Assembly (NCBI GenBank): GCA_002189035.1
Contig: CM007989.1
Coordinates: forward strand, 5,828,001-5,892,000
Reading direction: 5' to 3'
Origin: Utricularia gibba
Taxonomy: Eukaryota; Plantae; Magnoliophyta
Length of the DNA: 64,000 nt
The notes beneath the pieces were generated by a model. It saw nothing but the letters and a program-made list of their open reading frames with translations. It was not told the origin of the DNA and did no database searches. Below, one piece after another: positions 8,597 through 62,583 of this stretch; positions within the stretch are counted from its first letter, which is position 1, and each line of letters starts with the position of its first letter. A program made the translations under genes and the position numbers.

Positions 8597-10389
8597 ATGG
8601 GCAGAAAATCTAGCGCACTGAACATCTCTGCAGTTCGTTCCAAGTACTCGATTCCGGAGGAGTACATTTCTCAGGCCAGGGACGCCCAGATTCCCTAGGG
8701 GTCTGGAGAAAGGCCTCTTCCCTGTTTTAGTCTCCCCATCCCCATTGCCTATTTGGAAAGCGGCCTCCGATTTCCGCTCCATCCCCTACTCATTCAGTTT
8801 CTTCACATGTTTGCCATCCCCCTCTACTACCTGGCCCCAAATTCGATTTTCTGTTTTACTACCTTCTTATTCTACTCGGCAAGTATGGATCCAGCAATGA
8901 CCCTGGTGGATTTCTTCCAGCTCTTTAAAGTTGTAGTCCGAAAAGCTAAGCCACCGATGCATGGGCGTGCTCACTTTCAATTTCGTCGGTTCGAAGACAA
9001 TCTCGATTTCATCGTTAAACCTCCCGACACTCACCACGACTGGTGGTTTTCTTTCATTTGGGTTGCTCCTCCCATAGGAGCTAGATGGAACTTCTCGATT
9101 AAGCCTCCCAGTCCCTTTGAGATCAAACCATTCGGCCGCTTTCGTCCTTCTAATGATTTTCGAAGAGATGTGTATCGAAGGCTCAACAAATGCTCTGTGA
9201 AATACGAGTCCCAGTCCCAAATGCTCTCGCGAGATACATTGACTGCTTGTGGGATCCTTGGCCACACTCGGGGCAGGCCATGGTTCGATTTCATCATTCC
9301 CCCGGGTTCTGAGTTAGAGTTTCGTCATCTCTTTCAATCTCCACCCAATATAACTGTCATTTCTGGTACACCTCCCACTTCCAATCCGACAATTTCATTT
9401 CCCTCTGATCCGATTCTTGAATCTTTTGCTCGCCCTTCACCTCTAAAGAAAAGAAAAAGGGTTAAAGTTTGGATGCAGAAACCTTCTAAAAGGCACAGAG
9501 TAGTCAGGTTCTACCTCCCCGAATTGCGGTATTTTTATGACATTTCACCATCCTTTCAATTTTCGAATGTAGCTGAGGAAATAGCAGGAGAACCGCCTTA
9601 TAGGATTCGGTGATGGCCCGTTTCTCTACCGAGATGCAAAGGGCGCAAGAGTCTGATGCCGCCCCTTCCCTTCAGGTTCGTTTTATATGAACCGTTATGT
9701 TGGGTTCCCAATTTTATCTCGTTAACTCTCCTTCTAGGCCAGATCCCCGGAGGCTCAGTCGGATGCTGGCGATCACGTTTCAGAGGGGGATCAGATGATT
9801 GAGGTCTCCGAGACTCGGGAGTCCACTCCTCCTCCTCCAATGAGGAAGGGAAAAGAGAAACTCTTCGCTTCTACTGATCCTGCTGAACTCCTGATTCTTG
9901 GTACAGGACCCTTCTCGGCTGATGCCTCTACATCAACTCCTCCGAATGAAAGGAGGGATTCTCCCCTTGCTAATGAGGTAAGGGAAGATCCTGCTCTTTT
10001 GCCATCGTCGTTTCCCCCTGAGCTGCAAAGGGCCTTGGAAGAAGCGATCCCAAGTCTCTCAGGGGTCCAGCTGGAGGTCATACTCATGGGAATTTGACAA
10101 GTTTTCCTCTTCTTCTTTTTTGGAGTTGTGCATAGCTAGTTTCTAACTTAACGGTCTTTTTAGGCTCTTACTTTTGGATGGGGCGTGGCCAAGGAGATGG
10201 GGTCTCATTTGGAGGAAGGATGAGAATATGCTGGATGTTATCATGGATGATTATCTTGCTCCCGAACTCGGATTTGAGGCTGATCGGGAACGCCTAACTA
10301 CGATCATTCGGGCTAGGATCAGGCAGGAGAATGACGCCAAGCTAAGAGCTAGGATGGAGGCAGGGAATAAGAATCTCACTGTGATATAA
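8597..10389 (+). pseudogene. Antisense extra ORF of the Tat element (PF04195 Transposase_28-like domain), disrupted
   Basis: ATG 8597 is in frame with ORF 8753-9613 across one TAG (8696-8698). Motifs RSKYSIPEEY and YLESGLRFPLHPLLIQFLHMFAIPLYYLAPNS. Fragments 9795-10097 and 10174-10389 follow. Confidence 0.8.
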
Positions 10390-13300
10390 ATATGCTCCCA
10401 GTCCCGTTGTAAGGTGAACCGTCAACATACATGGCCCATCGGTCATTAGTTTCCACGAATCGGTCGATGGGCCTGGTCATCTCAACTACAAAATTGGCTA
10501 GAGCTGGGCTTTTATCGTCGTTTTCGACCTGAATTCGATATCCATTGTGGTTAACTCGACCGCTCATTTGATGACCCTGCTAGAAATTTCGGGTCGAGAC
10601 AGAATATTCTTCAATGGCTGATTGGTGAATACCACAATGTGCCGATCTTGGAAATACGATTTCAGCTTAGTGGCTGCCATTTTCAGAGCCAGGATGAATT
10701 TTTCGATCACTGTGTATCAGGTTTCAGCCAGTCACAAAACCTTGCTCACACAATGCACAGGCAGATGTGTTTCTCCTGAGATAGTTAAAACTGCGCTTAC
10801 TGCAACGGGCGATATTGATAAATAGAGCCCTAGGGGCTCCCCTTCCTTTGGAGCCACCAGAAGTGGTGGCGATGAGAGATATTTTTTGAGCTTCTCAAAG
10901 GCAATCCTACAATCCTTGTTCCATTCTAAAGTATTTCCCTTTCATAGAGCCTTGAACGAGATATGAAACGGCTGAGGGCAGCCAATTTACCCGTGAGACT
11001 CTGATACTCCTTGATTGTCCTTGGGGGTTACATTTCACATATTGCCTTAATCTTCTCGGGGTCCAACAATGACATCTACCCGTTTTTCTATCTTTGGTAA
11101 GGGGTAGGGGTCCCTCTCGCAACAGGCATTGAGGTTGGTGAAGTCCACACACATTCTCCATTTCCCCTCAGGCTTTAGGACTACGACCGGGTTGGCTACC
11201 CATTCGGAGTACTGAATCTCCTTCATGTAGTCGGTTTCCAGTAGCTCTCTCATTTTCTCTTTGATAATCCGACACTTTTCTTCGGAGAAATGCCGTTGTT
11301 TTTGCCGAATCGGCTTTGCCCCCGAGTAGGTATCAATGTGATGCTCAAAGTTGTGCTACAAAGTCTGCAGCAGTCCAGGAAAAAATATCGACATTCTTTC
11401 TTAGAAGTTGCGCTAACCGTTTCTCAAAGTTGGCGTTCAAGTTGATGCCAACGTGGGTCGTTTTCTGTGTATCTCCGAGTACTAACTGCAGTGACTTGTA
11501 TCCCACCGATTCCATTGCTTGCCTGAGAGGTTCCCGGGGTTCCTTTTCCACCATCATTATCCTGGGTTTCTTTGCACAAGAGTCTCGACAAGAGGACACA
11601 TAACAGGATCGGGCGGTCAGTTGGTCAATATCCAGCGTATAGATGCCCCCTTGTGTTGGGAGCTTAACTTTCAGATGCATAGTTGAGGGTAACATAGCAA
11701 ATTGGTTGATGCCGGGTCGGTCGAGAATGATTTTGTATGAAACCTCCGAATCCAGTATCAAGAATTCCAGCCTTTCCATCCAGTTTCGGCCTGCAGCACC
11801 AAATTTTACAGGTAATGTCATTTTTCTGACTGTCTGTACGGCCCATTGATCGAAGGCGTATAACTCCATGCGAATCGGGCGAATATCCCCCTCCTTAGAT
11901 GATGCGAGTAACTCGGCAACCTCTTTCTTCATAATGTTGCAGGAGCATCTCTAATCAATGAGAATCCTTCTTACCTTGGTGCTTTTGCATGTCCCAGCTA
12001 CCACCAAAGGTTCATTTCGTGTGGCTGGGCGACGGGAATGTCTCTTTCGGAGAAGTTGATATCTTCTTTTTTCCCAAGAAGCTCTTTCGGTTTGATTTTT
12101 CCCGATTTCGAACACTTCTCCCTTTCTTATTTCTTCCAAGTACCTTTTCCTTGCTTTTCCCAATTCGTTGACTTCGGTGCCTCTGGATACCATGTGGATT
12201 TCCCGAACATAGGGGGGACTACCTTGTGCCCGGTCGGCGTTTCTTAAACTTTCCGGTCTGTCCTGTTCCCTTTCGGAGTTCTGGCCTTTATTGGCGCATG
12301 GGGCCCCCCTGGTGGTTTTAGAGGGAATTTCTGATACCGGCTTCCTTCATTCCTTGAGTGTTCGTTACGTCCCCACTTTCGCGCTGTTCTTTGCATGAGG
12401 TCTTGGGTCACATCGTTCACCCCAATGTCGGCATGATATTGCTTGATCATCTTTTTCATCACCCGGCAGTAGGCAGTATCGTGCCCTGTCTTCTTGTGTA
12501 TCTCACAATATGTGTTCGTTTTGATCGGTCCCACCTGATACACTTCGCGGCATTTATTCGGTCGGGGGACCCCGTTGGGCTGTACTTCTTGCTGCAATAC
12601 CGGCCAGATTTCTACACGAATTTTCATTTCGGCTCTGAGGTTTTCATCGACTCGGATGTATTTCATGATCTTTCTCAGCAATTCCCCAAGGTTCTTTGGT
12701 GGGGATTTACACAGGCTCTACCCCAATTTGGACGTTCATAGGGCTCGCTTCATTATTTCAAATCTTTCCTTCAAATCCAGATGAACATCTTGTGCTAAGC
12801 AATTGAATCGGTCGATGGTTCTTCTCAAGCTCTCTTTTCGGTGGTCATACCGAATAGAATAAAGTGCTGCTTTTGAAGGTGGAGCTTCGATGTTGACAGC
12901 GTATCGGGTAGTGAAGAGCAACACCAACTCCCGATAAGATCCCACACTACATGGTTCTAACTTCTTGAACCGAGTCTTTGCTCCATTTTGGAGCGAGCAA
13001 GGGAACAACTTACATTTCATGGCCTCCGAATACCGGACCGTGGCCATCCTCATGTCGAAGTCAGTCACATGGGATATGGGGTCCCCTTTTCCGTCATACA
13101 TGGGTAATTCGTCGGGGACCCAAAATCCCCTCTCTGGTTCCTCCCTGATTAATTCATCCGAGAAGGGGTCAAAACATAGCGCTAGAGTACCAGCTGCTCC
13201 TTCAACACTGCTTCTCAAGGCTAGGTCGATATCGATCATAACGTCCCCTCTTCCAGTGCACACGTTCTAATCAAAGGCATCCCTGAAGCCCTTACTCTCT

Positions 13301-13770
13301 CTTCCTTTGGGCAGCATTTGTCTGCCAATAAGTTTTCTTCTCTCACGAATTTGGTCTAATTCTCTTTTTAGCTCCTGGCTCATAGATAAGTTGGTTGCAC
13401 CTCTACCTTCGCAACATCTCCTCCTCGGTTTCGGATTCAGTCTCCGTGTCAGGGGGTATTCCGGAACTAGAGGTTGTTTTTCAGTCCTTCGTGCGGTTTC
13501 GGGCGTTCCCTCCTGTTTGTTGGAGTTCAACCTCGAAGATGCCTTAAAGTCGGAGAAAATTTCCATCACAAGTATTTTCAGTTGTTCCCTACTGATGATC
13601 ATGAGGCCGGGGTCTTGTACGCCGGCACTTCCTTCGTTGTCGGACTTGGTGGCCATGTTATTTTCCGCCATGATGGATGTTTGATGAGCGGCTTCTGTGG
13701 ATTTCTCGAGTGGGACAATAGATCTTGCCCCATGGTAGGCGCCAAAAATGCGAAGGGTGAAAATTGGCAC
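10376..13770 (-). pseudogene. gag-protease-partial RT-RNase H of the Tat element (frameshifted; RT core and integrase missing)
   Basis: gag FWVPDELPMYDGKGDPISHVTDF and Cys-His box YCEIHKKTGHDTAYC; protease VRRILID; RT N-terminus EWVANPVVVLKPEGKWRMCVDFTNLN; thumb PEKIKAICEM*PPRTIKE; second RNase H start WAMYVDGS. Confidence 0.9.
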
Positions 13771-15990: not shown

Positions 15991-17614
15991 AAAGCAAAGA
16001 ACGAAAATCCTCATAATTTAAAATTCAAATTTCTAGAAACCTAACAAGAGAGATATAGAGTTTGAAGAATTTGTGTGAAGGAGAATAGAGATGTTCTCAA
16101 TTTCCTCCATTTAAATGATGGGAAATAGAACGTGTCATAGTTTGGGAACCTGCAATTAGCCATAATCATAATGCCCCTGTTGCTCAAATAAAGATCTTAA
16201 AATATGTTATGAGTAAGAGACAAATATTTTAAAGTATATTTATTTTGAAAAAATTGATATATATGAGAAATATTTAGAATATAAATATTAAATAGAAAAA
16301 AGATATATTTAAATATATAGATATTTTAAATATCATATTTGGTTTGATATTTAAAAATAGTATACAAAATGTGTTAGATGATTATATCGTTTTAAATAAA
16401 TTATAATTGAAAATATACACTCTTTTTAAAATGCATATTGAATATAGGTTTACTCTAATAAATTGAGAGGAAGATTATGGGAGGAGAATTTTTTAAGAAT
16501 AAAAATGATCGAAAATAGAATATAAAAAATTATTATGATTAATCATCCTAATAATTATCTTATATTAATTGAAAGATTTAAATTTCAATTTTCCTTTCAT
16601 TTCCTTTCATTTTCCAAATTTTAACTATTTCGAATCTCAAATTTCTAATCTAGATTTTTTAAATTCATGAAGCGAACAGTGAAACATGATTTTATTAATA
16701 ATCATATTCCGCCAAATCCTATTTAACAAACACACGCCATATTTTGTTACGGGGAAAAATACGTTTTGATGCTAACATTTCAAAGATTGCTTATAATTAG
16801 ATGCACACATTTTTTAAAATAGTTTTGTGGTACAAACGTTTCAGTTTTTATTCAAATTTAATACAAACGTTTAAAAATATATCATTTTGGTACAAACATT
16901 AAATATTATATTATTTTTCAAATATCAACGTTTTTTAAAACATTGTTTAAATATATATGTTGTTTAAAAAAGTTAAAAAAACAATACAAATGTTTTTTCA
17001 CACATACTTTTTGATACATCCGTTTATTGTAAATTATGATTTTGAACAAAATATATTAAAAATAATTAATATATTATAATATATATTAAAAATTAATAAA
17101 AAAATATAATTTATGTGTATTTCAAATTTTCATGTTTTCTAACTCATTAATTTAATTTACTTCATTATGTGAATTTGATTATTATATTATATTCATATTT
17201 ATAAGTTTTTCAAAATTTACAACAATATTAGAAAACTTTTTCTAATAATTAAAAAATATCTAAATAATATATTAATATTATAAGTAATATAATTGTAAAT
17301 ATCTATTCCAACATTTAATAATTTAAATCCATCATAATAAACTTAGTGCATTTTAAGTTGATTAATCACTTTTTTATAAAATGAGACATGACATTAATTA
17401 AATATTCCTATTGATTTGGATAGAATGAAAACTAAATATTAGATAATTAAATATTTTTTGGAATCATCGAAATGTTTAAATATCATGTTATCCATCAAAG
17501 TAAACTAAATGATAAGCATGCCAATCAAAAGAAACAACGATATAGCTATTAAAGTTTGGGAATCACCTACATCAAACTAACCAGTTCATCCCTACATGCT
17601 ATACGTATTTGATT

Positions 17615-18646
17615 TCAGTGGAATCGCCGACGTCCACCCATCATCACATTTGGCAATCCACATGTTGGAGCAAAATGTAATACATCATAACTCGTATACC
17701 AACTTCTTGTAAGCTACAAAATGATCAAAGTTAATAGTATTCCACTTATTGTATTTAACAATTTTGAATGGTTAGAGACTTACAAATGATGGATACTCAG
17801 AAGGAAAGAAAACTGGTGGTGCATTCTGTATGAGGAGCCTCACCGAATATAAAGCATATAACCCACATTCAGTTGGTCCAGTTTGTAATGGAACCTATAA
17901 AAAGAATAACTTTAAAAATCAATTTGCTATATGTGTTTGTACTATGCTATTTATTGAGGTTGCATTGTATGTACCTCAGGAAAGCGAATAGGCACAGAAT
18001 CCAACTTATTAACATTGAAAGAAGGTGCCGCATACCCTAGCATGTATTTCAGACACCTACACAAGTAAAGTAGTGATTTAGTCATAGCTAATTTATTGAT
18101 TAATGTAGTATAATAATTTCTAGTACCTATACAAATCTTCTTCCGCTGGACATAATGCATCTCCTGCACCCAAAGAATCTAAGACAAGGATCATTCTATT
18201 GCGAGCATCTCCAAAGTTACAGCATACCGTCACCACCCAATGACCTCTAGTTATAGAACATAACAGGTTAAACACATTGTATATAATATTCAAATATTAA
18301 GCAAAGTGTAGCTTACCGATAAACAATAGGCCACACCACGTATGGGCAAGTAAGGAAGGCTGGTCGATGAAGAAATATTCTACGAACTCTCTCCTCATTA
18401 CCAATCCTCAAAGTCTTCTCTTGTTTCACTTGTGGACTCTGATTTCAACAAACTAAACACATGAGCTCAAGGATGAAACAATGATTAAAAAAATCATACC
18501 TTTTCGTCTTTGTTTGGCATGTCTGTGTTTACCTTGGAAGTAGCTGAATTTTGGGGTTGATCAGAGGTGACCTTTGGCTCTGTTCCTGTGGATGGTTCTT
18601 GTGTTCCTTGTTCATTTTCTTCATTTTTTCCATAATCTTCCTTTTC
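17615..18646 (-). CDS. MULE-borne SUMO protease (peptidase C48, FUG1-like) module, six stop-free exons
   Basis: Exons 18646-18500, 18438-18317, 18246-18127, 18056-17975, 17894-17784, 17713-17615 (681 nt; all GT-AG; introns 61-80 nt; phases match). Translation includes YVVWPIVYRGHWVVTVCCNFGD, MILVLDSL and VPLQTGPTECGLYALY, i.e. the His/Asp/Cys triad with the oxyanion Gln. Confidence 0.85.
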
Positions 18647-18729
18647 CTATAATAAGGAAACAATAGATCTTGATAACAAATAATATCACACCATATGAAA
18701 CAAACCTATGATCCAATATAGCAGACTAC

Positions 18730-21153
18730 CTTTTTTTTTGGAGTTCAGCTCACATGTCCGTGCATTGTGCCCTATGTATTCACATGCACGAAAAAATTGT
18801 AATTGTCTTGTTTCAGCTTTCTTCTGTTTTTTATGAGGTGATTGTTTTTCATAAGGTGGCCTTTTTCAATGCTTCTTGGGTCTACCACGAGGTGTCGTAT
18901 GAAATATCGGAGGTAGTATGTTGCTCTTGTCCAACATTGGTCATTCCTTACTATCTGGCATACCTACCAAACAAAAGTTGAAAAAGTGAAGACAATAATT
19001 AACAACAAAAACTTTTTTCATGTTCATTACCATGAATTGAGTGAGCGTATGTTTCCCTAAAGTGCGTGTCGTTATACCAATCATGTATGTAATCCCTCGG
19101 ATTATCACGCTTGGTTCGTATAACTCGCACCGCATGTTTGCATGGTATACCTGCAGTTTATCAAGTAAGAAAGCAAACATAATTTGTGACTAAACATAAT
19201 CACTTACCAGTTAGTTGCCACATCCGACAAGAACACGTGGAGTCCCGGAGGTTAACACAGTAACAATGCAATCCCTTGACCCATTCCCAATGCCATTCAT
19301 CCGTAGATCTGATCTTCACACCAGCCTCTGGTGTGGAGTTGTTCTCTATAGTTTGCATGGATGATGGGGAGTACCTATATTTCCATTTGGATGCTTCTAC
19401 ACGTCGTTTGTTAAATCGGTCGGCAATGGTCCATCTGATCTCTTCTAGCATCCGTAGTATCGATAATCGCCGTGTATCAAGTAAGGAGGCATTCCAAGAC
19501 TCCGAAATGTTATTTGTTAAAGCTTCACATTTGGCATCCTCAGTGAAGTATGCATACGTCCACCTAGCTGGATTTATTTTACTCAGCCTACTGTATGCAT
19601 TGCTGTTCAACCGACCAAGAGCATCCATTTCCATTCTCCAAGTAGCTGGCGTGGATGATGTTGCACACTTCCAAACTTGAGTCTTGACAACATCTGAATG
19701 TGCACCTACATTCTCTTGTAGATGTCTAACACAATGCCACAACTACATAAATCACCATACACTTTAAATCAGTTAAATATCACATATGTTTAATTAACCA
19801 TACATAGAAAATAAAGTCTTACATGTATTAAAGGTAGTACAATATGCATGGAAGGCTTTAGCCCCGAGCCCCTATCTGCCATAAATGTGAACTTGTGCAT
19901 ATTATCCTCTGTAATACCCAAATCAACTTTAAGAAGGCTTAAAAACCACATCCATGTGTCCTCACTCTCAGTATCCACAACTGCGTATGCTAGTGGTAAA
20001 ATGTGTTGATCAGCATCAAATGTGCATGCACTCAAAATTTGACCACCCCCTCTACCTTTAACATGACAACCATCAACACCAACAAATGGTCGACAATACC
20101 TCCAACCCGTTTTACAGGCATCCAAACAAATGTAGAGTTTTTCAAAACGTCGATAAGTGTTGCTGATGTCTGGAGGTGAGAGGACTAGGTCAATAGTAGT
20201 TCCAGGATTGGATGAAACTAACTGTGCACAATACCGACCAATCATCGAATACTCCGTTGCTAGCTTTCCATCACTATCTCCCAATACCTTCTTCCGTGCC
20301 ACATGTGCTTGCATAGGATTCACCCACATGGATGTTGTTAAGTTGATGTGATGCCTAAAATCACGTGTGGTGATGTCTGGCTCACCTAATAACTTATCCT
20401 CAAAGTGTCTCACTAGATGCTTGGGTTTTAAAGACTTATTTTCAGTCAACTCACTGTCACATGAACTACAGTGCTCACTATGATACTTAGATACTTGCCA
20501 ATCTCGATCTGGACGAGGACCTGAGATGGTTACACCCCAACTACACCTTTCGTCCTGACCCCCTTCACACACAATACAGATGTATCTGTTGTCATTCCTC
20601 TTAAATTTCCACTGAATTCATTCCTGAATACAATAAGCAACGATGGCATCCCGTGCTGCTATTTTGCTATCAAATAATATTCCTTCCCTACATCGTAATA
20701 AAAAGACTTTTATGAATAATAAATAGAAACTTCAGATAAATACACATAGGAACCAACTCATACGCATTATAAGTAAAATTCATAATAATTATAAACATAA
20801 CATATACCAATCACATCTAGAAATTAGATGCAAAGAATTATTAATACTCAAAGAAATAATTAGAGATTAACCCCTAACTATTATTAATGTAAAAAATAGT
20901 ATAAGATTTACCTAAGATTTAATCCTTTCCATCCTTTTTTTGAGTTATAATATACCATTTCTTCATCTTCATGATCATATAACTCAATGTCTTGAGTGGT
21001 AGCCTCATGTGCTTGAAGCATGCATTCTTCCTTCCACTCAATTTTAGACATCGGTTCAACATTGAACGAGCACGGAGGTTGCAACCCACTAGATTCATAT
21101 TGAAACTCCTCCTCCGAATAAATGTATGATTCCGTAGTATCCGAATCACTCAT
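18730..21153 (-). pseudogene. MuDRA-type transposase (MuDR, MULE DDE, SWIM, C-terminal zinc knuckle), three nonsense codons
   Basis: Exons 21153-20912, 20687-19823, 19742-19208, 19150-19031, 18963-18730. Motifs CRPFVGVDGCHVKG, LPLAYAVVDTES, FMADRGSGL, HCVRH, CSCRMWQLTGIPCKHA, GRPKK, CEYIGHNARTC. In-frame TGA at 20618-20620, 18941-18943 and 18866-18868. Confidence 0.92.
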
Positions 21154-22304
21154 GGTTAGAACCTGTGGCACCAAAACAATTGAAAAGCTATAACAAATTA
21201 AATCGATATGATTCTACATCTGTCTAATAAACTTACGATTAAAGAAGAATGATATAAGATGATGAATCTAAAATTACCATCAATAAAACCCAGAATCTGA
21301 GAACACCGACTCAAAGTCAAGAGAGCGATGGGCTACTAAATAAGGACGATCGTGATGGATCAAGAGGACGACGGGTCAACAATCAGGGTGGCTTGTGATG
21401 GATCGTGATGGCTAACAAAAATCAGAGGATTTCATCATGGTGACTAGCAATAACTGAACCCTAATTATATTACATTTCTCAATTTGGGAATGGGTCAGCT
21501 AAATATATGTATTGAAATAAAAGCCCATTAGTAAACATTTGTTCTCATAATATAGGTGTTAAAAGGTGTGTTTTTATTTAAAAGATAAATTAAAAACATA
21601 TGTATCAAAAAAATTTCAAAAAAACGTTGGTATTGAAGATATATTATTTTTCAAAACATTAGTTTCAAAATAAAAATTTTAAAAACGTTTGTATGTAAAA
21701 TCTATAAAATTAGACAACGTATGTATCAAAAATCATATTATACAAACGTTAGTATAGAATTGTATGTTTTTTTCAAACATTTGTATTGAAATAAAACGTA
21801 GCCCTTTTGTCACTGTGAAACGTACAATTCAAATTGTTGCGTTTTTCCGCCGTTGAATTCCGGGTGCTCATATCTGCAGCGCTATTGAACCTTCGGTAAC
21901 TTTGCTCTTCTCATTTGCATCGTATCGGGTTGTAGACGCACTGTTCTACGCAACTTTTCGTAACCTAGATAGTTGAATCACCGTTTGATTTTCAATTCAT
22001 TTGGGATATTGGGATTTTGGTGAATGAGTGCAACGGAAATTCATTCATTGCGACAGACCTGAAGCTCAATGATGGCTGCCATTACTTTTGCTGACTGATT
22101 TTTCTTTATCAAAGGCGATTCTGTGGTCACCTCCATAGAATCTAGGCTATTTGCTTTCACGGGACAGAGTGGTTATAGAAACTGTATAACTCTGTTTTTC
22201 TGGTGATTTCTTGCAACAGTAGGGTTTTCTTAATGGGGATTGAATTTGATTCTAGTTAATGATATTGGATTTGATATAATGCGTGTGACTTATGTTTCAG
22301 GACG

Positions 22305-23677
22305 ATGTATGGGAGGAAAGCAAGCGAGCTTGTGAGAGACTTTTCCACTCGTGAACCTGGACAGATAAGCAGTTTCAATGTAAGCTAAACTTGGTTAGAT
22401 TCTGCTTTAGCTCAGGATCATGACAGTGTTTGTGAATCGGATGAGTTTGAATTGAGGTGAGGGGTGAGATTATGCTTGAAAGGCTGCTGGATACATTGAT
22501 TTGCATGACATGTGGTTATGAATGTTAATTTTTTGGAACAGTAAGTCAAGAATTCTTTTTTCAGGCCGTTTTTTATATGCTGGTATATTTAATTGAATAG
22601 TCTCTGGTTGGGAATCCTAAAAGTGAATTATTTGTTCTTATGGCTTCTTGGTTATTCTCTGATGTCCTTCGAACGTATACCAAGAATGACCTGTTCACTC
22701 AAGTTCTAGAAGAATGCGATGGGCATCTCCTTCACCTTCAGCCTCTAATAAGGTTTTTCTTTTTCCGTTCACATTCACCTTAATTACCTTTAACGTATTT
22801 GAATTCAAGTGATTAATTTTAATGGTCCTCCAGAAAAATCCAGGAGCAAGAAAACAAACTGAAAGATGTAATGAGTTCAGAAGATGGAAGTGAAATTTCA
22901 GAGGATGAAAGGTTGAAAACAGAGGAAGCGAAGGCAAGTTTGCGGACAGCTTTGAAATCTGACCAGTTTGGAGCACTTGTCCATCACCTGTCACTAGTTC
23001 GCAACAAGCGCAGCCTCATGGCTTATGTGTGCGTACTCTCGATATTTATTTTTTCATTTAATTTCTGCTCAATTTTCTACGGCAAACATATTCTCATTTT
23101 GTATTCTGAAATGTAGTTATAATAGAGCAGAGATGATCAGAACTTTGGGATGGATGGTTGATAGAGTCCTGCCAAGAGATATTCAAGACAAACTAAGTAC
23201 TGATGAGAAGGAATATTTCAAGAAGCATGTTGCAACTCTGCAGTCATATATGGCAGAGCTTGATCTACTTTTGACTGTGGTTTGTATGAAGCTACTACTA
23301 TCTTGGTTCATCTGAGGATAATGGGTTACATTTTTTTGCTTATTAAACGTGATTATATGAGTCATGTAGTTGATTACAAGTGAGTTTTTTTTTTTTTTTT
23401 TGTGTTGTTATTTAGGACATGATTCCACCAAAGGATCCTTTTGTAAAGGTTCGAGTAGTTGATGACATCGGGCAGGTTGCTCTGAGTGATCAGGTCGCCA
23501 ACTTATCCAAACATGCTATAATGTTCCTGAGGCGAATCGATGTAGAACAATACATCACTCTGGTATTTCTTCTTGGTCTACTCGATGAACGAACATCCAA
23601 TTTCTCTACACATTTCTTTCTCATTTCCTTTGTGTTCTTTTGATAATCAGGGCCAAATGGAAGAGCTCCCCAGCTGA
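22305..23677 (+). CDS. PSF1: DNA replication GINS complex subunit PSF1, 224 aa
   Basis: Exons 22305-22379, 22685-22752, 22834-23028, 23117-23279, 23416-23562, 23651-23677 (675 nt). MYGRKASELVRDF, GALVHHLSLVRNKRSLMAYVYNRAE, DMIPPKDPFVKVRV, GQMEEL. A 5'UTR intron donor lies at 21896. Confidence 0.93.
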
Positions 23678-39945: not shown

Positions 39946-41313
39946 TCAAAGACGATGTAGCAGCAGCTTGAAATAAACTATGACGTAGAAAGCCAGAGAA
40001 AAAACAGCCAGAATGTGCTGCCAAAACAGAAGAGCTGAAGCCTCACTTACAGCATACCCCCTCAAGCTTGCAACGGCTCCCAGTAAGATGGCACTTGGTG
40101 TGGTGTACTGCAACAGAAGCACAAACCTGTACATTTCGTCCTCCTGGATTAAAAAATTCAGCTTGTCTGCAAAGAACACGACCCCGATTCCGATCATGGG
40201 AAGTATGACTAGTCTAGCCACAATCACTCCGATTGTAGTTCTGATCCCAAGTTTAGATTCATTGGGTCCCTCGGCAAGCATTCCTCCTAGAATAAGCATC
40301 ACAAAAGGCACTGTTGCTCCTGCTAAAATATCTAAGCTGTCTGTGATAAATGAAAGAGGGGCATCATCTCCGTACACGAATGATTTGATCGGAGGAACCA
40401 TGCCAACAAAGAAAGCCAGGAAGGTAGCCAGAGTTGGTGGTTGAAGGATGTGCTGAATGGGGGTCTTTTCCACGACTATTCGGATTCTTCTCATCATCCG
40501 TGGCTCTGCTAAGCATCGAATGGATTTGGGGCTCCCTGGGTCAACACCGCCTTCCTCCAAGGCTTCAACTTCAGGAATAGATGTTTGGGACAGATTTGAT
40601 ACCGAGGCAAATATTCTAGCAATCAGTGGTGTTTTGCAATGCACTGTTTCCCTGTCTTCCATTCCAGGCCACTCTGCTTCCACAAGCAGAGGTCGACTAA
40701 GATCATTTGTGGACACTTGGGGCTGCGCCTCAATAGCACCCCCACTTTCAACTATCTCATAATACTCAATCGGAGGCTCCATCATGTGGTAAACAAGAGT
40801 ATAAACAAGAAGAACAGCAACCCACTGGGCAAAAGAAACATAAGCTGTACCAGTAGTATGACAAGACGGACCAAATGGATTCTCAGCACTGTGGCACACT
40901 GATCCCACAATAGCCAATGGAAGATTCCCAGTGTTCCCAAATGCAGTCATAATAACTGTAAACCTGTAGAATTCCGGAGGGGGGCGGCATAATTTCGCTA
41001 CAATCAGTCCCAACACACAACCAATAAGTGTACTGAGAATAACATTTACAGGTATGAACCACCACTTAACGAAATTCTTGGCATTTATTGTCTCTCCTAA
41101 ATGAATGAAAATGAGGCAGGGCAAGAACAACGCAAAAACAAGCTTGCTAAGCAGCCTAAATGTCGCTCTGGGAACAATTTTCGTCTTGGGGTGCGCAAGA
41201 ATCAATCCGAATACAGTAAGACTGATGAGCTTCAACACAGGCATAATCGAGAGAATCAGCTCCTCTCGAGTAGAGCGCATACCATTCTGGTTTCGCCCGA
41301 GATCTGATCCCAT
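39946..41313 (-). CDS. PILS2: PIN-LIKES auxin carrier, intronless PILS2 type, 455 aa
   Basis: Single open ORF. LLSKLVFALFLPCLIF, KWWFIPVNV, AFGNTGNLPLAIVGSVC, AYVSFAQWV, LILGGMLAEGP, YRFVLLLQYTTPSA; two hydrophobic halves separated by an acidic loop. Confidence 0.95.
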   Translation of the reverse strand: MGSDLGRNQNGMRSTREELILSIMPVLKLISLTVFGLILAHPKTKIVPRATFRLLSKLVFALFLPCLIFIHLGETINAKNFVKWWFIPVNVILSTLIGCVLGLIVAKLCRPPPEFYRFTVIMTAFGNTGNLPLAIVGSVCHSAENPFGPSCHTTGTAYVSFAQWVAVLLVYTLVYHMMEPPIEYYEIVESGGAIEAQPQVSTNDLSRPLLVEAEWPGMEDRETVHCKTPLIARIFASVSNLSQTSIPEVEALEEGGVDPGSPKSIRCLAEPRMMRRIRIVVEKTPIQHILQPPTLATFLAFFVGMVPPIKSFVYGDDAPLSFITDSLDILAGATVPFVMLILGGMLAEGPNESKLGIRTTIGVIVARLVILPMIGIGVVFFADKLNFLIQEDEMYRFVLLLQYTTPSAILLGAVASLRGYAVSEASALLFWQHILAVFSLAFYVIVYFKLLLHRL

Positions 41314-44375: not shown

Positions 44376-47006
44376 GTGTTTAATTGTTTTGTGATTCAGT
44401 TGATGCATTTGCGTTCTTCTGGTGCAGGTGATCTTGTTTTCCACCCAGAAATCGAGATAACTATCAGCAAGAACTGCACAAGAGTGAGAGAAGCAGCAAG
44501 GTTGAGCAGACTCCCTGCTGTTACTCAAGCTAATTTCAATATGGCAGAACATGAGAAGACCCTGAATGAGCTTTATGCAGCTGACCACACTTACAGAGGG
44601 CTTTGTATTAGGTTCTCTGATGACACAGCCAACGAATTAAAGCAAGCTATGATTAATTTTCTGCCCAAGTATTATGGAAAAGTGGTTGAAAACCCACATG
44701 AACATCTTGACAACGTGATTGTTGTTTGCACCTCTTTCAAGAGTGCTGGTTTGACTGAGGATGCCATCTGTTTGAGGGCATTCCAATTTACACTGGAAGG
44801 AAGTGCAAAAACATGGTTCAACTCTTTGAAGCCTGGGAGCATCACGGATTGGAGTGGGATGAAGAAAGTATTTCTCAACAAATATTTCCCTGCTTCAAAA
44901 GCTGAAGGAATAAGGAAGGAGATCAGTGATATTGAGCAGTCAAATGGCAAATCTTTACATGAATATTGGGAGCGTTTTAATCACCTGCTAGGCTCTTGTC
45001 CACACCATGGATTTCAGACCAATGCATTGGTCAAGTATTTTTATGATGGTCTTCTATGCACGGATAGGGCCATGGTGGACTCTGCAGCAAGTGGATTTTT
45101 GAGGAAAAAAACTCTCACAGAAGCTCTTGCGCTACTTGAGGAGTTGGCTGAGCATTTCAGGCACATAATCAGAAAACAGGCTTCGAATAGAAGAGTATAT
45201 GAGCTGGAATGTAAGCCAAAGTCATCAGAAAATAAGTTGACAAAAAATGTGGCAGCCATGTCTGAGATGATGAAGGAACTCTTTTTATTCCAAGCTAAGA
45301 ATATGGCTTGCGAGAACTGCCACAGGATTGGACACATTGCTGATAAATGTCCCGAATTGATGGAGGAAGAACATATGAAAGCAATGGGATATTTAGAGCC
45401 ACAAAGGAAGAAATATGATCCCTATTCGAGCACCTACAATCCTGGATGGAGGGATCATCCAAATTTCAGATGAAGTGATAATGATAATTCTTACAAGGGT
45501 GAGAGTTCATCAGCTGGACAGCAAGGATTTCAGAAAAATTTCCAGCAGCAACAACAACGTTCTTATCAGGCTCCACAATTTTGCAAGCCAAACCAGCAAA
45601 TGCAACAGCAATTTCAGCCTCCAAACTCGAATAATTCTGGAGGAAATTCTGGAAGCTCATTGGAGGATATTTTGAAGACTTTCATGACCCAATCAATAAA
45701 AAACCAAGCTGAGAACCAACAAGCTATCAAGAATCTTGAAATTCAAGTTACTCAGCTAGTAACAGAGGTTGGGGAGCTGAAGCAAAAAGGAAGCCTACCG
45801 TCACAAGCCAAACAGAATCCTAACTCTGGGGGAGGATAGAATATCATCGCAATGACATTGAGAAGCGTAAAAGAAAAACCTGGAAGAGAATTAGTCCTAC
45901 CTAAGAGTAATTTAGAGACGGCAGAAGACTCTGAAAATGTGGTGGAAGAAGATATTGAAGAACAAGAAGTAGAGATTGCTACTGAGCCTCTCGTGGTAAA
46001 AGTAACCCCACCACCATTTCCAGGAAGGCTGAAGGCAAGAGAGGAGCAAAATGAAAAAGAAAAGATGTTGAGAGCCTTGGGTAATACCCAATTAAATTTG
46101 ACATTGCTGGAGTATATTGATTTGGTGCCTAAAAGCGTGAAGTACCTGAAGCAACTCTGTATGTCTAAGCCAAAATTGAAGGAAAAAGGCAAGGTGAAGC
46201 TGAATGAGAGTTGTTCAGCCCTTTTGACTTGGAAGCTACCTGAAAAACGCAAGGACCCTGGAACATTTTTTATTCCTTGCAAAATAGGTGACTTGAACAT
46301 CAGGAGAGCAATGGCTGACCTGGGAGCCTCTATAAACGTGATGTCATTTTCTGTATATGAGACTCTCAGGTTAGGACCTCTACAAGCCTTAGGAGTGCAA
46401 ATTGAGCTTGCTGACCGAAGAATTATTTCTCCAAAAGGCTTTGTTGAAGATGTTCTTGTGAAGATTGAGCAGCTAGTGTTCCCAACAGACTTTTATGTGG
46501 TGAATATACCTGCTGGAGGTTCAAAGGATACGACCATCATCCTTGGAAGACCCTTCTTTAGCACTTCCAACACCATAATTAATGTGAAGATGGGTACAAT
46601 TGAGTTATCCTTTGATAAAGAAAAGATTACGCTGGACATGAAGGAAGTGAACAATTATCCCAGCGATTTTGAGAGTGTATGCTCAGTGGATATCATGGAT
46701 GAATTAGTTGAAGAACATATAGAGAGAGAAGATGACAAAAAGGAAAATGGATATAAAGAAGGCTTTGTTGAAGAATCAAATATTGAGGTGAATATGGGGC
46801 ATTTGAATGCTATAGAACGTGAATCAGAAGACAAATATGTGAATTTCAAGTCTTCCCTAGCTCACACGAAACGGGTTTTGGTTGATGTTGAGAAGAAAAA
46901 TTTCAGTGTTAGTCTTAGCTCGGATCAAGAATCACATTATTTGAAGGATTCACCCAAGATCCAAAGGAAATTTTGGATAAGGTTGAAGGGGAGAATGTTT
47001 GTGTAA
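44376..47006 (+). pseudogene. Athila gag-protease, one reading frame with two nonsense codons
   Basis: ORFs 44376-45473, 45600-45839 and 45852-47006 share one frame, separated by TGA (45471, in HPNFR[W]) and TAG (45837). Zinc knuckle CENCHRIGHIADKC; protease AMADLGASINVM and IILGRPF. Confidence 0.93.
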
Positions 47007-58338: not shown

Positions 58339-60038
58339 ATGGATGCCAAAATTAACGCCTTTGAGAAACTGAGATTAGAGTCGACATCAGAAAAGCTACC
58401 TTTACGGATGCAAGATGTATCACACTTGAGTCATCCAAAACCTGCTCCGACACTAGGGGCTGCAGTTGATCAAGATAAGTTAAACACAGAGCACAAGAAT
58501 GTGAAGGATGGTTATGCAGCATTGGATGATGGAGCAAAAGGCGTTGCAAAGAAAAGCACCAGCATCAAGAATGGTGATCGTGTGGATTATGCAGAGAGTG
58601 GGAAGAGCAGTTTGTGTAGGGTAGTACAAGTACCGATATTAGTGATGAGAGTACTTGCAGTAGCCTGACTAACAGTGCTAACAAACCCCATAAATCAAAT
58701 GATATTAGATGGGAGGCAGTCCAGGCAGTCCGCTCCAAGGATGGAGGAGCTTTAGATCTGAGGCATTTCAGACTCTTGAAAAAATTGGGTTCTGGTGATA
58801 TTGGTAGCGTGTACTTGTCTGAATTATGTGGTACGATGTGCTATTTTGCCATGAAGGTTATGGATAAGGCTTCTCTTGCCAGTCGGAAGAAGCTTCTGCG
58901 TGCTCAGGTGGAAAAAGAAATATTGCAGTCTCTAGATCACCCTTTTCTGCCAACTCTGTACTCGCATTTTGAAACCGAAAAATTTTCATGCTTGGTTATG
59001 GAATTCTGCCCAGGAGGTGATCTGCATACCCTTCGGCAAAAACAACCAGGAAAGCATTTCTCAGAGCAAGCAGTGAGGTATGCAGCTTCATGATCTTTTA
59101 TTTTTTCAGCCTATTTTTTTTGCCTGATATTCTGTAAGTCAATGGTCTATGTTGTGTATGAAATGCAGGTTTTACGTTGCCGAGGTTCTTCTTGCTATAG
59201 AGTACCTTCACATGCTGGGCATCGTGTATCGTGACCTCAAGCCAGAGAATGTGCTTGTAAGGAGGATGGGCACATTATGCTATCGGATTTTGATCTTTCA
59301 CTTCGCTGCAATGTGAGTCCAACTCTGATCAAGTCCTCATCCCTGGAAACTGACTCACAGAAGAAAAACAGTGGCAATTACTGTGTCCAGCCATCCTGCA
59401 CTGAGCCATCATGCATCCAACCATCTTGTGTTATTCCCACAACATGCTTTGGACCTCGCTTCTTCTCTGGTAAATCAAAGAAAGAGCACAAACCCAAGAA
59501 TGAGATTCGAAGTCAAGTGAGCCCATTGCCGGAGCTCATTGCTGAACCTACAGATGCCCGTTCCATGTCCTTTGTTGGTACGCATGAATACCTGGCCCCA
59601 GAGATCATCAAGGGAGAAGGGCATGGCAGTGCAGTTGACTGGTGGACATTTGGTATTTTCATGTATGAACTGCTGTTTGGAAAGACACCATTCAAGGGAT
59701 CTGGAAATCGAGCCACACTTTTCAATGTCGTTGGCCAGCCACTGCGGTTCCCTGAGTCACCAGTGGTGAGCTTTGCAGCAAGAGATTTGATCAGAGGTTT
59801 GTTAGTGAAGGAGCCACAACATCGATTGGCGTATAAACGAGGAGCAACTGAAATAAAGCAACACCCTTTCTTTGAAGGCGTGAACTGGGCTCTCATCCGT
59901 TGCGCTAGTCCTCCAGAGGTCCCTAGACTGGTTGATCTCGAAAAAGTCGTTGCCTCTGTGCCATCCTCTGCGACTGTGGAAGCTGCTGTACCAGCTGCCA
60001 AGATCCTCCATAATTATCTGGAATTCGATTTCTTTTAG
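58339..60038 (+). pseudogene. D6PK: D6PK/D6PKL-type AGCVIII protein kinase with two single-base frameshifts (true lesion or assembly error)
   Basis: Exons 58339-59077 and 59169-60038. [42 protein letters not shown]-rich insert [28 protein letters not shown]-terminal EFDFF. One G missing at ~58620 and one at ~59262. Confidence 0.9.
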
Positions 60039-60544: not shown

Positions 60545-62583
60545 TCACCAAAGGGGCTTCTCACCAGGCAAGTACGATGGTGAACTCCCCTCTTGCTTGG
60601 TTTTCCTCTTGTGGAACACGACACTAAAGCTAGGCATGAGGGCTTTCCTACCGGTTGATGATGACTTAGATTTCTCTAACTTTCTTGTTTCCAGTGCTTT
60701 CTCTGGAGATCCAAGTTGATAACTATACGGAGAGAGTTCTGATGGTTTCTCTGCTTCAGAAAGGATGCGAGATGCTATCTCTGCTGCTTTCTTTTGTTCC
60801 TGTTCACGCCATCTTCTGAGTTCGCCTTCCACAGCTCTTCTTGCAGCTTCAGCCATCTCTGCCTTTTTCAGTGCCTCCTTAGTTGCAGTTTTCATGTCTT
60901 CTATTTCCTTCTGCATACTCTCAAGTCTCTTCAGAGCCTCGTCTTCACTGGCTTTTATAGCTTCTACCTGGGCCATTGCGGCTGCGACCTTTAACTCTGC
61001 TAACTTTTCAGACTCCTCAACTTTTCGGTTCAATGATTCAAACTCACCTCTTGATATTGTGATCTCTGCTCCAGCATACAATGCCGGGGAACGTTCTGCA
61101 TTAGCCTTCTCAGATAGCTTCTTGATTTGATCAAGTACTCTAGCCTCAGATCCCTTAGCTTCTTCAGCTTCAAGAATCACAGTTCTTAGTCTACTTTCAG
61201 CTTCCTCCAGCTCAGTTTTTCTAGCGTCTGCTTCTAACTTCATCTCTTCAGCTTTCTTTTTCATCTCATTCGCTTCCCGCTTCGCATTTTCAGTTTCCAA
61301 AGCCAACACACGGTGTGAAGCTGGGAGTTCTTCTGACAACATTCTCACTTTGGCTTCCTCAGCAAGAGACTCCTCTAACTCAGACTTGGCTTTCAAGAGC
61401 TTCAGATGAAGATTACCCGCAGCTGATTCCATTTCTGCTTCTTTCTCTTTCAATTCAGAATGCTCTCTCCTTACATCTTCAAGTTCCGATTTAAGGGTAT
61501 CCACAAGGATCCTTAGAGATCTCTCCTCCTCTGCCATTTTAAATAAAGATTCCTTGGCATCGTCTAGTTCCTTAGTCACAGTATTTACAGAGTCACGATC
61601 TAAAGCCCTCGCTTGTTCAATCTGACTGACTACAGATTCGATTTCCGAGGAAGCCTCATTCAGTTGAGTCTCTACACTTTTTACCCTCTCAGGGTCGGTG
61701 TCTTTCTTCAAGCCAAGCAGCTTTGTTTCCAATTCTTTCAGTCGAAATTTCTGCATTTGCTTCTGCTCTTCCTTTTTAGTACAGATCGCAATTTCATCTT
61801 CTTTCACTTTGGCTGCTGCGAGCTTTATGTACTGTAAAGAAGCATTCACACTGCAAATTTCCTTGGTAATCTCATGAATTCTCGCCATGTTTTCTTTCAC
61901 GGCATTGTCTGCTTCAAAGGCCTGCTTTTCTGCTGTGTTTTTCGCTTTCAAGGATGCAGCATAGTCCAGGCGACATGCACCAAGCTCCTGCTTCGTCGCA
62001 TGAAGTTCAGCCATTGTAGCCACATATTGAACCCCCTGAGTTTCGACATCTTTCTTTGAAACAAAATCAACTCCCTCAAAACCATCACTGTTTCTAGTAA
62101 AATTCTTTGCTTGCTCTCTAACAATTTCAGTGTCCCGAATAGCTTGGTTTTTCGAATCACTCGTAACTTTAAGCTTCTCATTCAGATGCTCCACAGTATT
62201 TTTAGCCTTTTCAAGCTCTGAGACAGCCTGACCTTTAGTTGTCTCGGCATTTTTCAGCTGATCTTTCAACTTATTCAACTCCTTAACAGCCAAATGAAGC
62301 CGTGTTTCCTTAGCAAGCACTCTCTGCCAAAAAGAAACAAACAACACAGCTTGTGAAGGCAATCCTATTCAACTCTCATCTGGTACAAAGAAAAGCGGAG
62401 CCACATAGATACCTCTGCGGACTGTGCTTCGGTCTTCCTGACAATCGGCTTCACCCCAGAAAAGGCACTTTCTCCAAATAAGGTAATTGCATCCTTCACA
62501 GACTGAAAGGGTGGGCTGGTATCTATCTCGCCAACCTCAGCCTTACCCGATCCGTTGGTTCTTTTGTAATCTTTGGCAACCAT
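60545..62583 (-). CDS. WEB-family (DUF827) coiled-coil protein, At5g55860-like, 649 aa
   Basis: Exons 62583-62413 and 62323-60545. EVGEIDTSPPFQSVKDAITLFGE; long heptad repeats; AEMAEAARRAVEGELRRWRE; PSYLPGEKP C-terminus. Confidence 0.93.

Follow-up and report, generated by a model that had tools for sequence, protein, structure and literature searches.

The element at 16751-21804 probably belongs, as a decayed copy, to a moderately repeated family of Mutator-like elements with terminal inverted repeats (TIRs), in which a mudrA-type transposase is followed on its own strand by a short, intron-containing Ulp1/C48-like module. It is 5,054 bp long and codes on the minus strand; all coordinates are positions in the window, i.e., the whole 64,000-nt stretch of Utricularia gibba that was analysed (CM007989.1:5,828,001-5,892,000 of GCA_002189035.1). 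Ulp1-like proteases are among the most recurrent passenger domains of plant DNA transposons.

The borders of the element are defined by the following features, none of which is assigned a strand:

16742-16750, left copy of the target-site duplication (TSD), 9 bp, TTTTGTTAC, read directly; kept as a single copy in the empty-site contig of run X4
16751-17042, left TIR, starting GGGG..TACGTTTT and with several AAACGTTTGTA-like motifs within
21515-21804, right TIR, from the TIR alignment
21805-21813, right copy of the TSD, TTTTGTCAC, identical to the left copy at 8 of 9 positions

The TIRs are degenerate, with about 280 bp aligned at 76% identity, and their alignment score of 166 compares with 85 +/- 9 in shuffles. 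A contig of another accession (run X4) was found to run from 16748 directly to 21812, with 5,063 bp missing. This is the length of the 5,054-bp element plus one 9-bp copy of the TSD, which places the protease exons inside the element. The insertion lies at the promoter of PSF1. Of the features that mark a TIR-MULE, a MULE domain, long TIRs and a TSD of 9-11 bp with an empty site were found. The preliminary description, made from the letters alone, had proposed such a TIR/TSD-bounded MULE containing the protease exons, and the TIR alignment, the TSD and the empty site now back it; the concern raised there, that the TSD pair might be coincidental and the ULP exons lie outside, is answered by a gap that skips exactly the element and one TSD.

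Within these borders, eleven exons and one homopolymeric run make up the coding part, all on the minus strand:

20912-21153, minus, transposase exon 1, with the ATG at 21153 (exon model)
19823-20687, minus, transposase exon 2, N-terminal DNA-binding region and MULE domain, in-frame TGA at 20620-20618 (Pfam PF10551)
19208-19742, minus, transposase exon 3, catalytic core continued and first half of a putative SWIM finger (Pfam SWIM, exon model)
19031-19150, minus, transposase exon 4, with the remaining half of the putative SWIM finger (Pfam, exon model)
18730-18963, minus, transposase exon 5, GRPKK motif and CCHC-type zinc knuckle, TGAs at 18943-18941 and 18868-18866 (exon model)
18731-18739, minus, A9 run directly upstream of the exon-5 donor (GT at 18729-18728), whose length fixes the transposase/protease frame
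18500-18646, minus, linker exon 6, acidic, of low complexity and 48% A, first in-frame ATG at 18520-18518 (GT-AG borders, phase)
18317-18438, minus, protease exon 7, start of the recognisable protease part (GT-AG borders, matching phase)
18127-18246, minus, protease exon 8, catalytic His (GHW) and Asp (LDSL) (GT-AG borders, protein-atlas neighbours)
17975-18056, minus, protease exon 9 (GT-AG borders, matching phase)
17784-17894, minus, protease exon 10, catalytic Gln and Cys (PLQTGPTECG) (weak Pfam PF02902 match, protein-atlas neighbours)
17615-17713, minus, protease exon 11, with the stop codon TGA at 17617-17615 (AG acceptor, matching phase)

The five predicted transposase exons sum to 1,996 nt and encode a mudrA-type protein that has a MULE domain and a putative SWIM finger. 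Pfam PF10551 (MULE) matched the exon-2 piece with an E-value of 6e-9 and 36.7 bits (cut-off 27.6). The SWIM finger is split by an intron, its halves reaching 19.4 and 14.0 bits against a cut-off of 19.6 (E 7e-4 for the match in exon 3), and the CxC...CxH pattern can be read across the joint of exons 3 and 4. The reading frame is interrupted by the three in-frame TGA stops listed above, the two in exon 5 being private to this copy, where sister copies have TGG and CGA, respectively. A transposase or fusion product cannot come from this copy; it could have been mobilised by other copies, or could have decayed after its insertion through C-to-T and G-to-A changes. The idea that an intact protease next to a stop-bearing transposase reflects selection was considered and rejected, as the probability of all three stops falling in the transposase is 0.53.

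The six predicted protease exons amount to 681 nt, with GT-AG borders and agreeing phases, and are open over 226 codons; all ten splice sites and the four catalytic residues (His-Asp-Gln-Cys) of the module are intact. In its translation, GHW is found at residue 91, LDSL at 112, PLQTG at 159 and ECG at 166, with residue 167 as the catalytic Cys. The order of these residues and their spacing (21 from His to Asp and 54 from Asp to Cys, by hand count on the translation) are typical for Peptidase C48. This family was named for 91 of 100 protein-atlas neighbours of exon 8 (score 0.89) and 74 of 100 of exon 10 (score 0.93). Exon 10, compared as a single exon only with PF02902, aligned to positions 162-190 of the 217-position profile with 12.1 bits (cut-off 20.7) and an E-value of 0.17, and exon 7 alone had no Pfam match. 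The exon models confirm the arrangement first described, with five transposase exons followed on the same strand by six stop-free GT-AG exons (681 nt, beginning with an acidic linker) in matching phases. The catalytic set and the predominance of Peptidase_C48 among the atlas neighbours likewise bear out the identification of the module as Ulp1/C48-like, on the strand that encodes the transposase.

The module is a trait of the family and no one-off; most family copies retain the protease part. Judged by Logan contig depth, which is a rough guide only to copy number, the family stands at roughly 15-25 x single-copy depth and the interior of the element at about 15-30 x the single-copy flank; in run X4, which is without this insertion, the protease part is at about 16 x, versus about 23 x single-copy depth. 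There are, on the other hand, about 40 recognisable residues upstream of the catalytic His, preceded just by the low-complexity linker, and judging from the translation the module seems to lack the N-terminal portion that a normal C48 domain has; the protease may therefore be inactive. On another reading the module would be inert cargo, a 3′ ULP fragment captured in a Pack-MULE-like manner without its N-terminal substrate-binding part and passively carried along without function. This is unlikely in our estimate. The short stretch ahead of the His, with no Pfam match, agrees with it, as do three amino-acid substitutions in the protease that are private to this copy (17619, 17829 and 18007), and a review describes most captured gene fragments as pseudogenes (PMC13317346). 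No RNA run was found among the runs listed as containing this stretch, which fits a silent passenger as well. A functionless fragment is at odds, however, with the intact catalytic residues, splice sites and 226-codon frame, with the retention of the module in most copies, and with the recurrence of Peptidase_C48 in active TIR transposons of many plant genomes (PMC12973397). For the neighbouring single-exon gene at 39949-41313, an exact look-up gave no record.

Homology searches were carried out with pieces of both parts, the protease queries being single exons only, as the spliced 226-aa module is without a reference entry. When exon 8 (39 aa) was compared by phmmer with 1.84 billion representative proteins, just two chance matches to repetitive bacterial proteins were obtained. 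A word-indexed protein search with a 275-aa transposase piece gave no match at E <= 1e-10, an overly strict threshold; nor did such searches with a 180-aa piece of exon 3 and a 40-aa piece of exon 10, where the length filter excludes full-length relatives of single-exon queries. No relative turned up in metagenome scans, for which the queries were the 275-aa transposase piece and the 58-aa open reading frame of exon 8, and neither exon 8 nor exon 10 had a match when its sequence was searched against the PDB.

How the protease might be expressed depends on the A-run at the end of exon 5. The eleven exons total 2,677 nt; with exon 5 ending in phase 1 and exon 6 beginning in phase 0, transposase and protease miss a common frame by one base. 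By computation, a run of A8 or A11 would give a spliced transposase-protease fusion in frame, A7 or A10 would give the transposase alone, terminating at a TAG that overlaps the splice donor, and the A9 of this copy leads out of frame to a dead end after 8 codons. If the A9 form is read through the donor, the stop lies 14 codons beyond it, about 40 nt from the acceptor. An alternative donor at 18533 was tried as a rescue and, by hand reading, did not restore the frame. Among sister copies, most of the depth was A9, as in this copy; A10 (+1) accounted for 100 of 675 of the depth in run X4 and for 28 of 50 in run X1, A11 (+2) for 64 of 675 in run X4 (6 contigs, about 10% of the depth), and A7 (-2) was seen in one contig of run X1. 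The preliminary description had the 11 exons one base off a single 891-aa open reading frame; the length and the offset are correct, but the transposase carries three in-frame TGAs in addition. The joining of the two parts that it proposed fails in this copy and in the bulk of the sister-copy depth, which is A9 and A10 and thus not in frame, and the check for in-frame sister copies that it suggested turned up the A11 minority.

These frame states accommodate a CUMULE-type element with two genes, in which the transposase has its own stop and the protease is made separately from the linker ATG, the frames nearly fitting by chance because the linker is A-rich and poor in stops. We consider this a serious possibility, if somewhat short of an even chance. 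The ATG at 18520-18518 could start a stand-alone protease of 184 aa, with the catalytic Cys at residue 125, and in cucumber the Ulp1 gene of CUMULE, a separate gene of five exons, is expressed whereas its mudrA is silent (PMC8126186). That the linker exon is open carries little weight, because it is rich in A and poor in T (48% A, 12% T), and by hand reading a second frame is also open in the majority of sister copies. Moreover, among the best-supported differences listed, sister copies differ per base in the linker about as much as in intron 5. However, the acceptor follows the A9 read-through stop by roughly 40 nt, which offers no space for a promoter of its own, the frame of exon 6 begins to be open exactly at the acceptor, and in-frame A11 copies do exist.

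To return to the decayed family member with which we began, in working relatives the protease would serve as an accessory function of the element. Its product may be a C-terminal extension of the transposase or, just as conceivably, a free protein of about 184 aa started at the linker-exon ATG, each being a guess short of even odds; in either form it would remove SUMO or some related modifier, acting on the transposition machinery or on proteins close to the element. If not, the protease would be inert cargo, a guess only slightly less likely than either of the others.

The origin of the module was the second subject of the preliminary description, which saw in it a host FUG1-class (Class IV) ULP that had been captured independently, introns included, and joined to the C-terminus of the transposase, so that a deSUMOylase would be tethered to the element's own ends against silencing. 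The LDSL motif, the VP.Q...ECG-type Cys loop and the AP...W tail presumably recall ULP2/FUG-type proteases, and this resemblance is a lead only. Five introns within 681 nt are expected for a capture at the DNA level, and repeated independent uptake of ULPs by MULEs has been suggested from grapevine (PMC2528002). Like the module, FUG1 (At3g48480) is a small ULP confined to the catalytic part, with the triad present (PMC6117582). It is a host gene with its Cys at residue 246, though, whereas the transposon-borne module is shorter N-terminally, with the Cys at 167 (125 from the internal ATG), and the frame of this copy and of most sister-copy depth speaks against a joined product. The tethering of a deSUMOylase to the TIRs as an anti-silencing device is speculation, and FUG1 is reported to act in the opposite direction, being needed for repeat-expansion-induced silencing (bioRxiv 10.1101/2023.01.13.523841). 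A FUG1 capture as a whole appears improbable. A wider version, in which a FUG-class module in an active TIR-MULE family would link host FUG1 by capture or domestication, and slippage in the A-run would be a heritable switch with transposase alone (A7/A10) and fusion (A8/A11) as its two states, is very unlikely.

This dead copy by itself adds little. The family is young enough for insertion polymorphism and its frame states differ at one A-run, which together would make it a convenient natural series for testing the protease as part of the transposase versus alone. Only a proven FUG-class link could lift the finding above routine annotation, the origin of FUG1 having been called elusive in the literature.

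The element is of an already described type, as ULP-carrying MULEs, which the preliminary description took to be known, have been published for melon, cucumber, grapevine, rice and Arabidopsis, including same-strand and fused cases. The novelty of a ULP-MULE fusion is weakened by the grapevine work, which found ULP sequences that follow the transposase and share its orientation and frame in MULEs of grapevine, melon and rice, both with and without TIRs (PMC2528002), and by annotated fused MULE-transposase/ULP proteins of rice (PMC12903978). The likeness to the CUMULE, grapevine and rice modules is one of description and architecture: as here, the ULP follows the transposase in the grapevine and rice elements, in some families in the same orientation and frame, and a frame-setting A-run is not described in either paper. 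The KAONASHI/KIU elements of Arabidopsis (Hoen 2006; PMC6117577, PMC13317346, PMC2528002) share Ulp1/C48 carriage on Mutator-like elements, many copies and preserved catalytic residues, and their ULP expression is low. These KI-MULEs, however, are non-TIR (VANDAL-type) elements, with the ULP joined to a VANC-type gene opposite to mudrA (PMC2528002), whereas our element has TIRs and carries both parts on the minus strand, and so differs from KIU on both counts. CUMULE (van Leeuwen 2007; PMC8126186) is, as here, a TIR MULE with a 9-11 bp TSD, a mudrA-type transposase and an internal multi-exon Ulp1-like gene, and is multi-copy (about 60-90 regions in cucumber), with polymorphic insertions near or in genes. 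It measures 7.7 kb with near-perfect TIRs of 118 bp, and its Ulp1 is a separate five-exon gene of 1,599 nt, whereas the Utricularia element measures 5.05 kb, with degenerate TIRs of about 280 bp and a module of 681 nt in six exons that adjoins the transposase on the same strand.

As inverted repeats, the two ends of the element are 76% identical over ~280 bp (score 166; shuffled sequences score 85 ± 9), and the element occupies 16751-21804, i.e., 5,054 bp between TTTTGTTAC and TTTTGTCAC. The decisive evidence came from Logan contigs of publicly available DNA runs, mapped onto the stretch: in X4, a run from another accession, a 2,863-nt contig of single-copy depth joined 16748 directly to 21812. 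The 5,063 bp that it skips equal the length of the element and one 9-bp duplication copy together. In that accession the site is thus empty, the borders are genuine and they enclose the protease exons, so that the TIR/TSD-bounded MULE around these exons, as first proposed, is confirmed by both the TIR alignment and the contig; its anatomy holds up, and its limits are well defined. The flanks of the empty-site contig are ~4% divergent from the window, and the insertion is younger than this split, although it need not be very recent.

A neighbouring gene in the 21805-22400 region starts, a short distance downstream of the element's right end, with a short non-coding exon (donor near 21896); its ATG is at 22298 and its product begins MYGRKASELVRDF. 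Mutator elements favour the 5′ ends of genes, and the insertion, absent in X4, may affect the expression of this gene. Elsewhere in the window, a GC-rich block at 8753-13770 (47% versus ~35% elsewhere) contains ORFs, one with a weak match to Transposase_28 (“putative gypsy type transposon”), and the remaining content is as follows.

Other features of the window
39946-41313, minus: single-exon 455-aa membrane transport protein (Mem_trans, full-length match)
44376-47006, plus: retrotransposon gag and aspartyl-protease ORFs
59277-60038, plus: kinase-domain exon
60545-62362, minus: WEMBL-family ORF

The exon model of the element was rebuilt from the sequence and then checked by script.

Exons of the element (GT-AG; phases match in exons 6-11)
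21153-20912, minus: transposase exon 1
20687-19823, minus: transposase exon 2
19742-19208, minus: transposase exon 3
19150-19031, minus: transposase exon 4
18963-18730, minus: transposase exon 5
18646-18500, minus: protease exon 6 (linker)
18438-18317, minus: protease exon 7
18246-18127, minus: protease exon 8 (GHW and LDSL)
18056-17975, minus: protease exon 9
17894-17784, minus: protease exon 10 (PLQTGPTECG)
17713-17615, minus: protease exon 11

The five transposase exons sum to 1,996 nt, with GT-AG borders throughout, and their pieces matched the Pfam MULE domain (E 6e-9) and the SWIM finger, which is split by an intron. Three in-frame TGA codons interrupt them, at 20620-20618, 18943-18941 and 18868-18866, of which the last two are private to the window copy: sister copies read TGG and CGA there, and this reading restores the glycine of a CCHC knuckle. 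Where the window copy departs from near-unanimous sister copies, most of its bases are T in place of C or A in place of G, the pattern expected of deamination of methylated cytosines. The window copy is dead.

The six protease exons proved as originally described, GT-AG throughout and 681 nt in sum, with agreeing phases and 226 codons free of stops by script. His, Asp, Gln and Cys are all present in the correct order (exons 8 and 10), and their spacing in the translation, 21 residues from His to Asp and 54 from Asp to Cys, fits the C48 family. Comparisons with Pfam and the atlas were made with single exons: exon 10 gave a weak match to Peptidase_C48 (E 0.17, profile positions 162-190 of 217), and Peptidase_C48 was the name of 74 of its 100 named atlas neighbours (score 0.93) and of 91 of 100 for exon 8 (score 0.89), in both cases overwhelmingly in plant clusters. 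The C48 assignment is taken as sound. Recognisable protease sequence begins only ~40 residues ahead of the His, and, judging by where exon 10 matches the profile, the N-terminal quarter or so of a typical C48 domain appears to be missing. Protein, metagenome and PDB sequence searches with single exons and transposase pieces gave no useful match. An ATG at 18520-18518 opens a reading frame of 184 aa. The lack of stops in the protease ORF, as against the broken transposase, is no evidence of selection, as stop-prone sites number 73 in the transposase and 17 in the protease, and all three stops would fall in the former by chance with a probability of 53%.

Since X4 lacks this insertion, all its contigs inside the element derive from other copies. 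Their summed depth, a rough copy-number guide only, is 15-30x that of the single-copy flank (transposase ~23x, protease exons ~16x, ends 30-40x), which shows a multi-copy family that has kept the protease part in most copies. Run X7, which looks like a bisulfite-converted library, was left out of the variants: almost every differing site (16400-22200) is C>T or G>A, and its loose ends are G-depleted. In X8 (organism B), two short contigs ~96% identical to exon 8 and its flanks (18065-18301), at depth 2-4 versus ~23-28 for most others listed from that run, could represent a relative of the element in another species or a trace of organism A.

Whether the two parts form one protein depends on an A-run at 18731-18739, immediately before the exon-5 donor. 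The preliminary description had placed the 11 exons, 2,677 nt in all, one base off a single ORF; the total and the offset are correct (exon 5 ends in phase 1, exon 6 starts in phase 0), but with three stops in the transposase the wording was too close. The window copy and most sister-copy depth have nine As (A9), for which the computed product stops after 8 codons if spliced, or carries a 14-codon tail if not. One extra A was found at 28 of 50 depth in X1, another public run, and 100 of 675 in X4, two extra at 64 of 675 in X4 (six contigs), and two fewer in a single X1 contig. By computation, A8 or A11 would put exons 5 and 6 in one frame, and A7 or A10 would end the transposase at a TAG overlapping the GT donor; in such copies (18726-18739) splicing at the donor removes this TAG. 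The A11 copies show that in-frame copies exist, and they are a minority in the data seen. The proposed joining of transposase to protease therefore fails for the window copy and most of the depth, and a minority of family members could encode a fusion. No RNA run containing the stretch was among the listed runs, and splicing across 18730/18646 is predicted.

The linker that would join the two (49 codons, acidic, 48% A, 12% T) precedes the recognisable protease. Nearly all sister copies have C on the plus strand at 18531, which by hand reading turns a TAA of a second frame into GAA, leaving two frames of the A-rich linker open in most of the family; the second starts with an ATG at 18634 and is lysine-rich. 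Because the exon is T-poor, the openness of the linker itself is weak support for a fusion, and among the best-supported sister-copy differences listed the linker differs per base about as much as the neighbouring intron.

The module was proposed to resemble FUG1, and capture of a FUG1-type gene had been suggested as an anti-silencing device. FUG1 is a small ULP consisting of the catalytic region only, whose origin has been called elusive (PMC6117577, PMC6117582), with the catalytic Cys at residue 246 (bioRxiv 10.1101/2023.01.13.523841), versus residue 167 in the module. Repeat-induced silencing requires FUG1 (bioRxiv 10.1101/2023.01.13.523841), so a FUG1-like activity does not by analogy predict anti-silencing.

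There are many published descriptions of MULEs that carry a ULP. In Arabidopsis KAONASHI/KIU, a non-TIR element, the ULP is joined to a VANC-type gene opposite to mudrA (PMC2528002, PMC6117577, PMC13317346), whereas the present element has TIRs and bears its ULP on the transposase strand. In rice, ULPs are fused to MULE transposase domains (PMC12903978), and a survey of 1,007 plant genomes counts Peptidase_C48 as one of the additional domains that recur in active TIR transposons (PMC12973397). In CUMULE of melon and cucumber, a TIR-MULE, Ulp1 forms a separate gene of five exons that, unlike mudrA, is expressed (PMC8126186), and in several grapevine MULE families a ULP follows the transposase, in either orientation and in some cases in the same frame, for which repeated independent capture was suggested (PMC2528002). 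It is the CUMULE and grapevine kind that the element fits.
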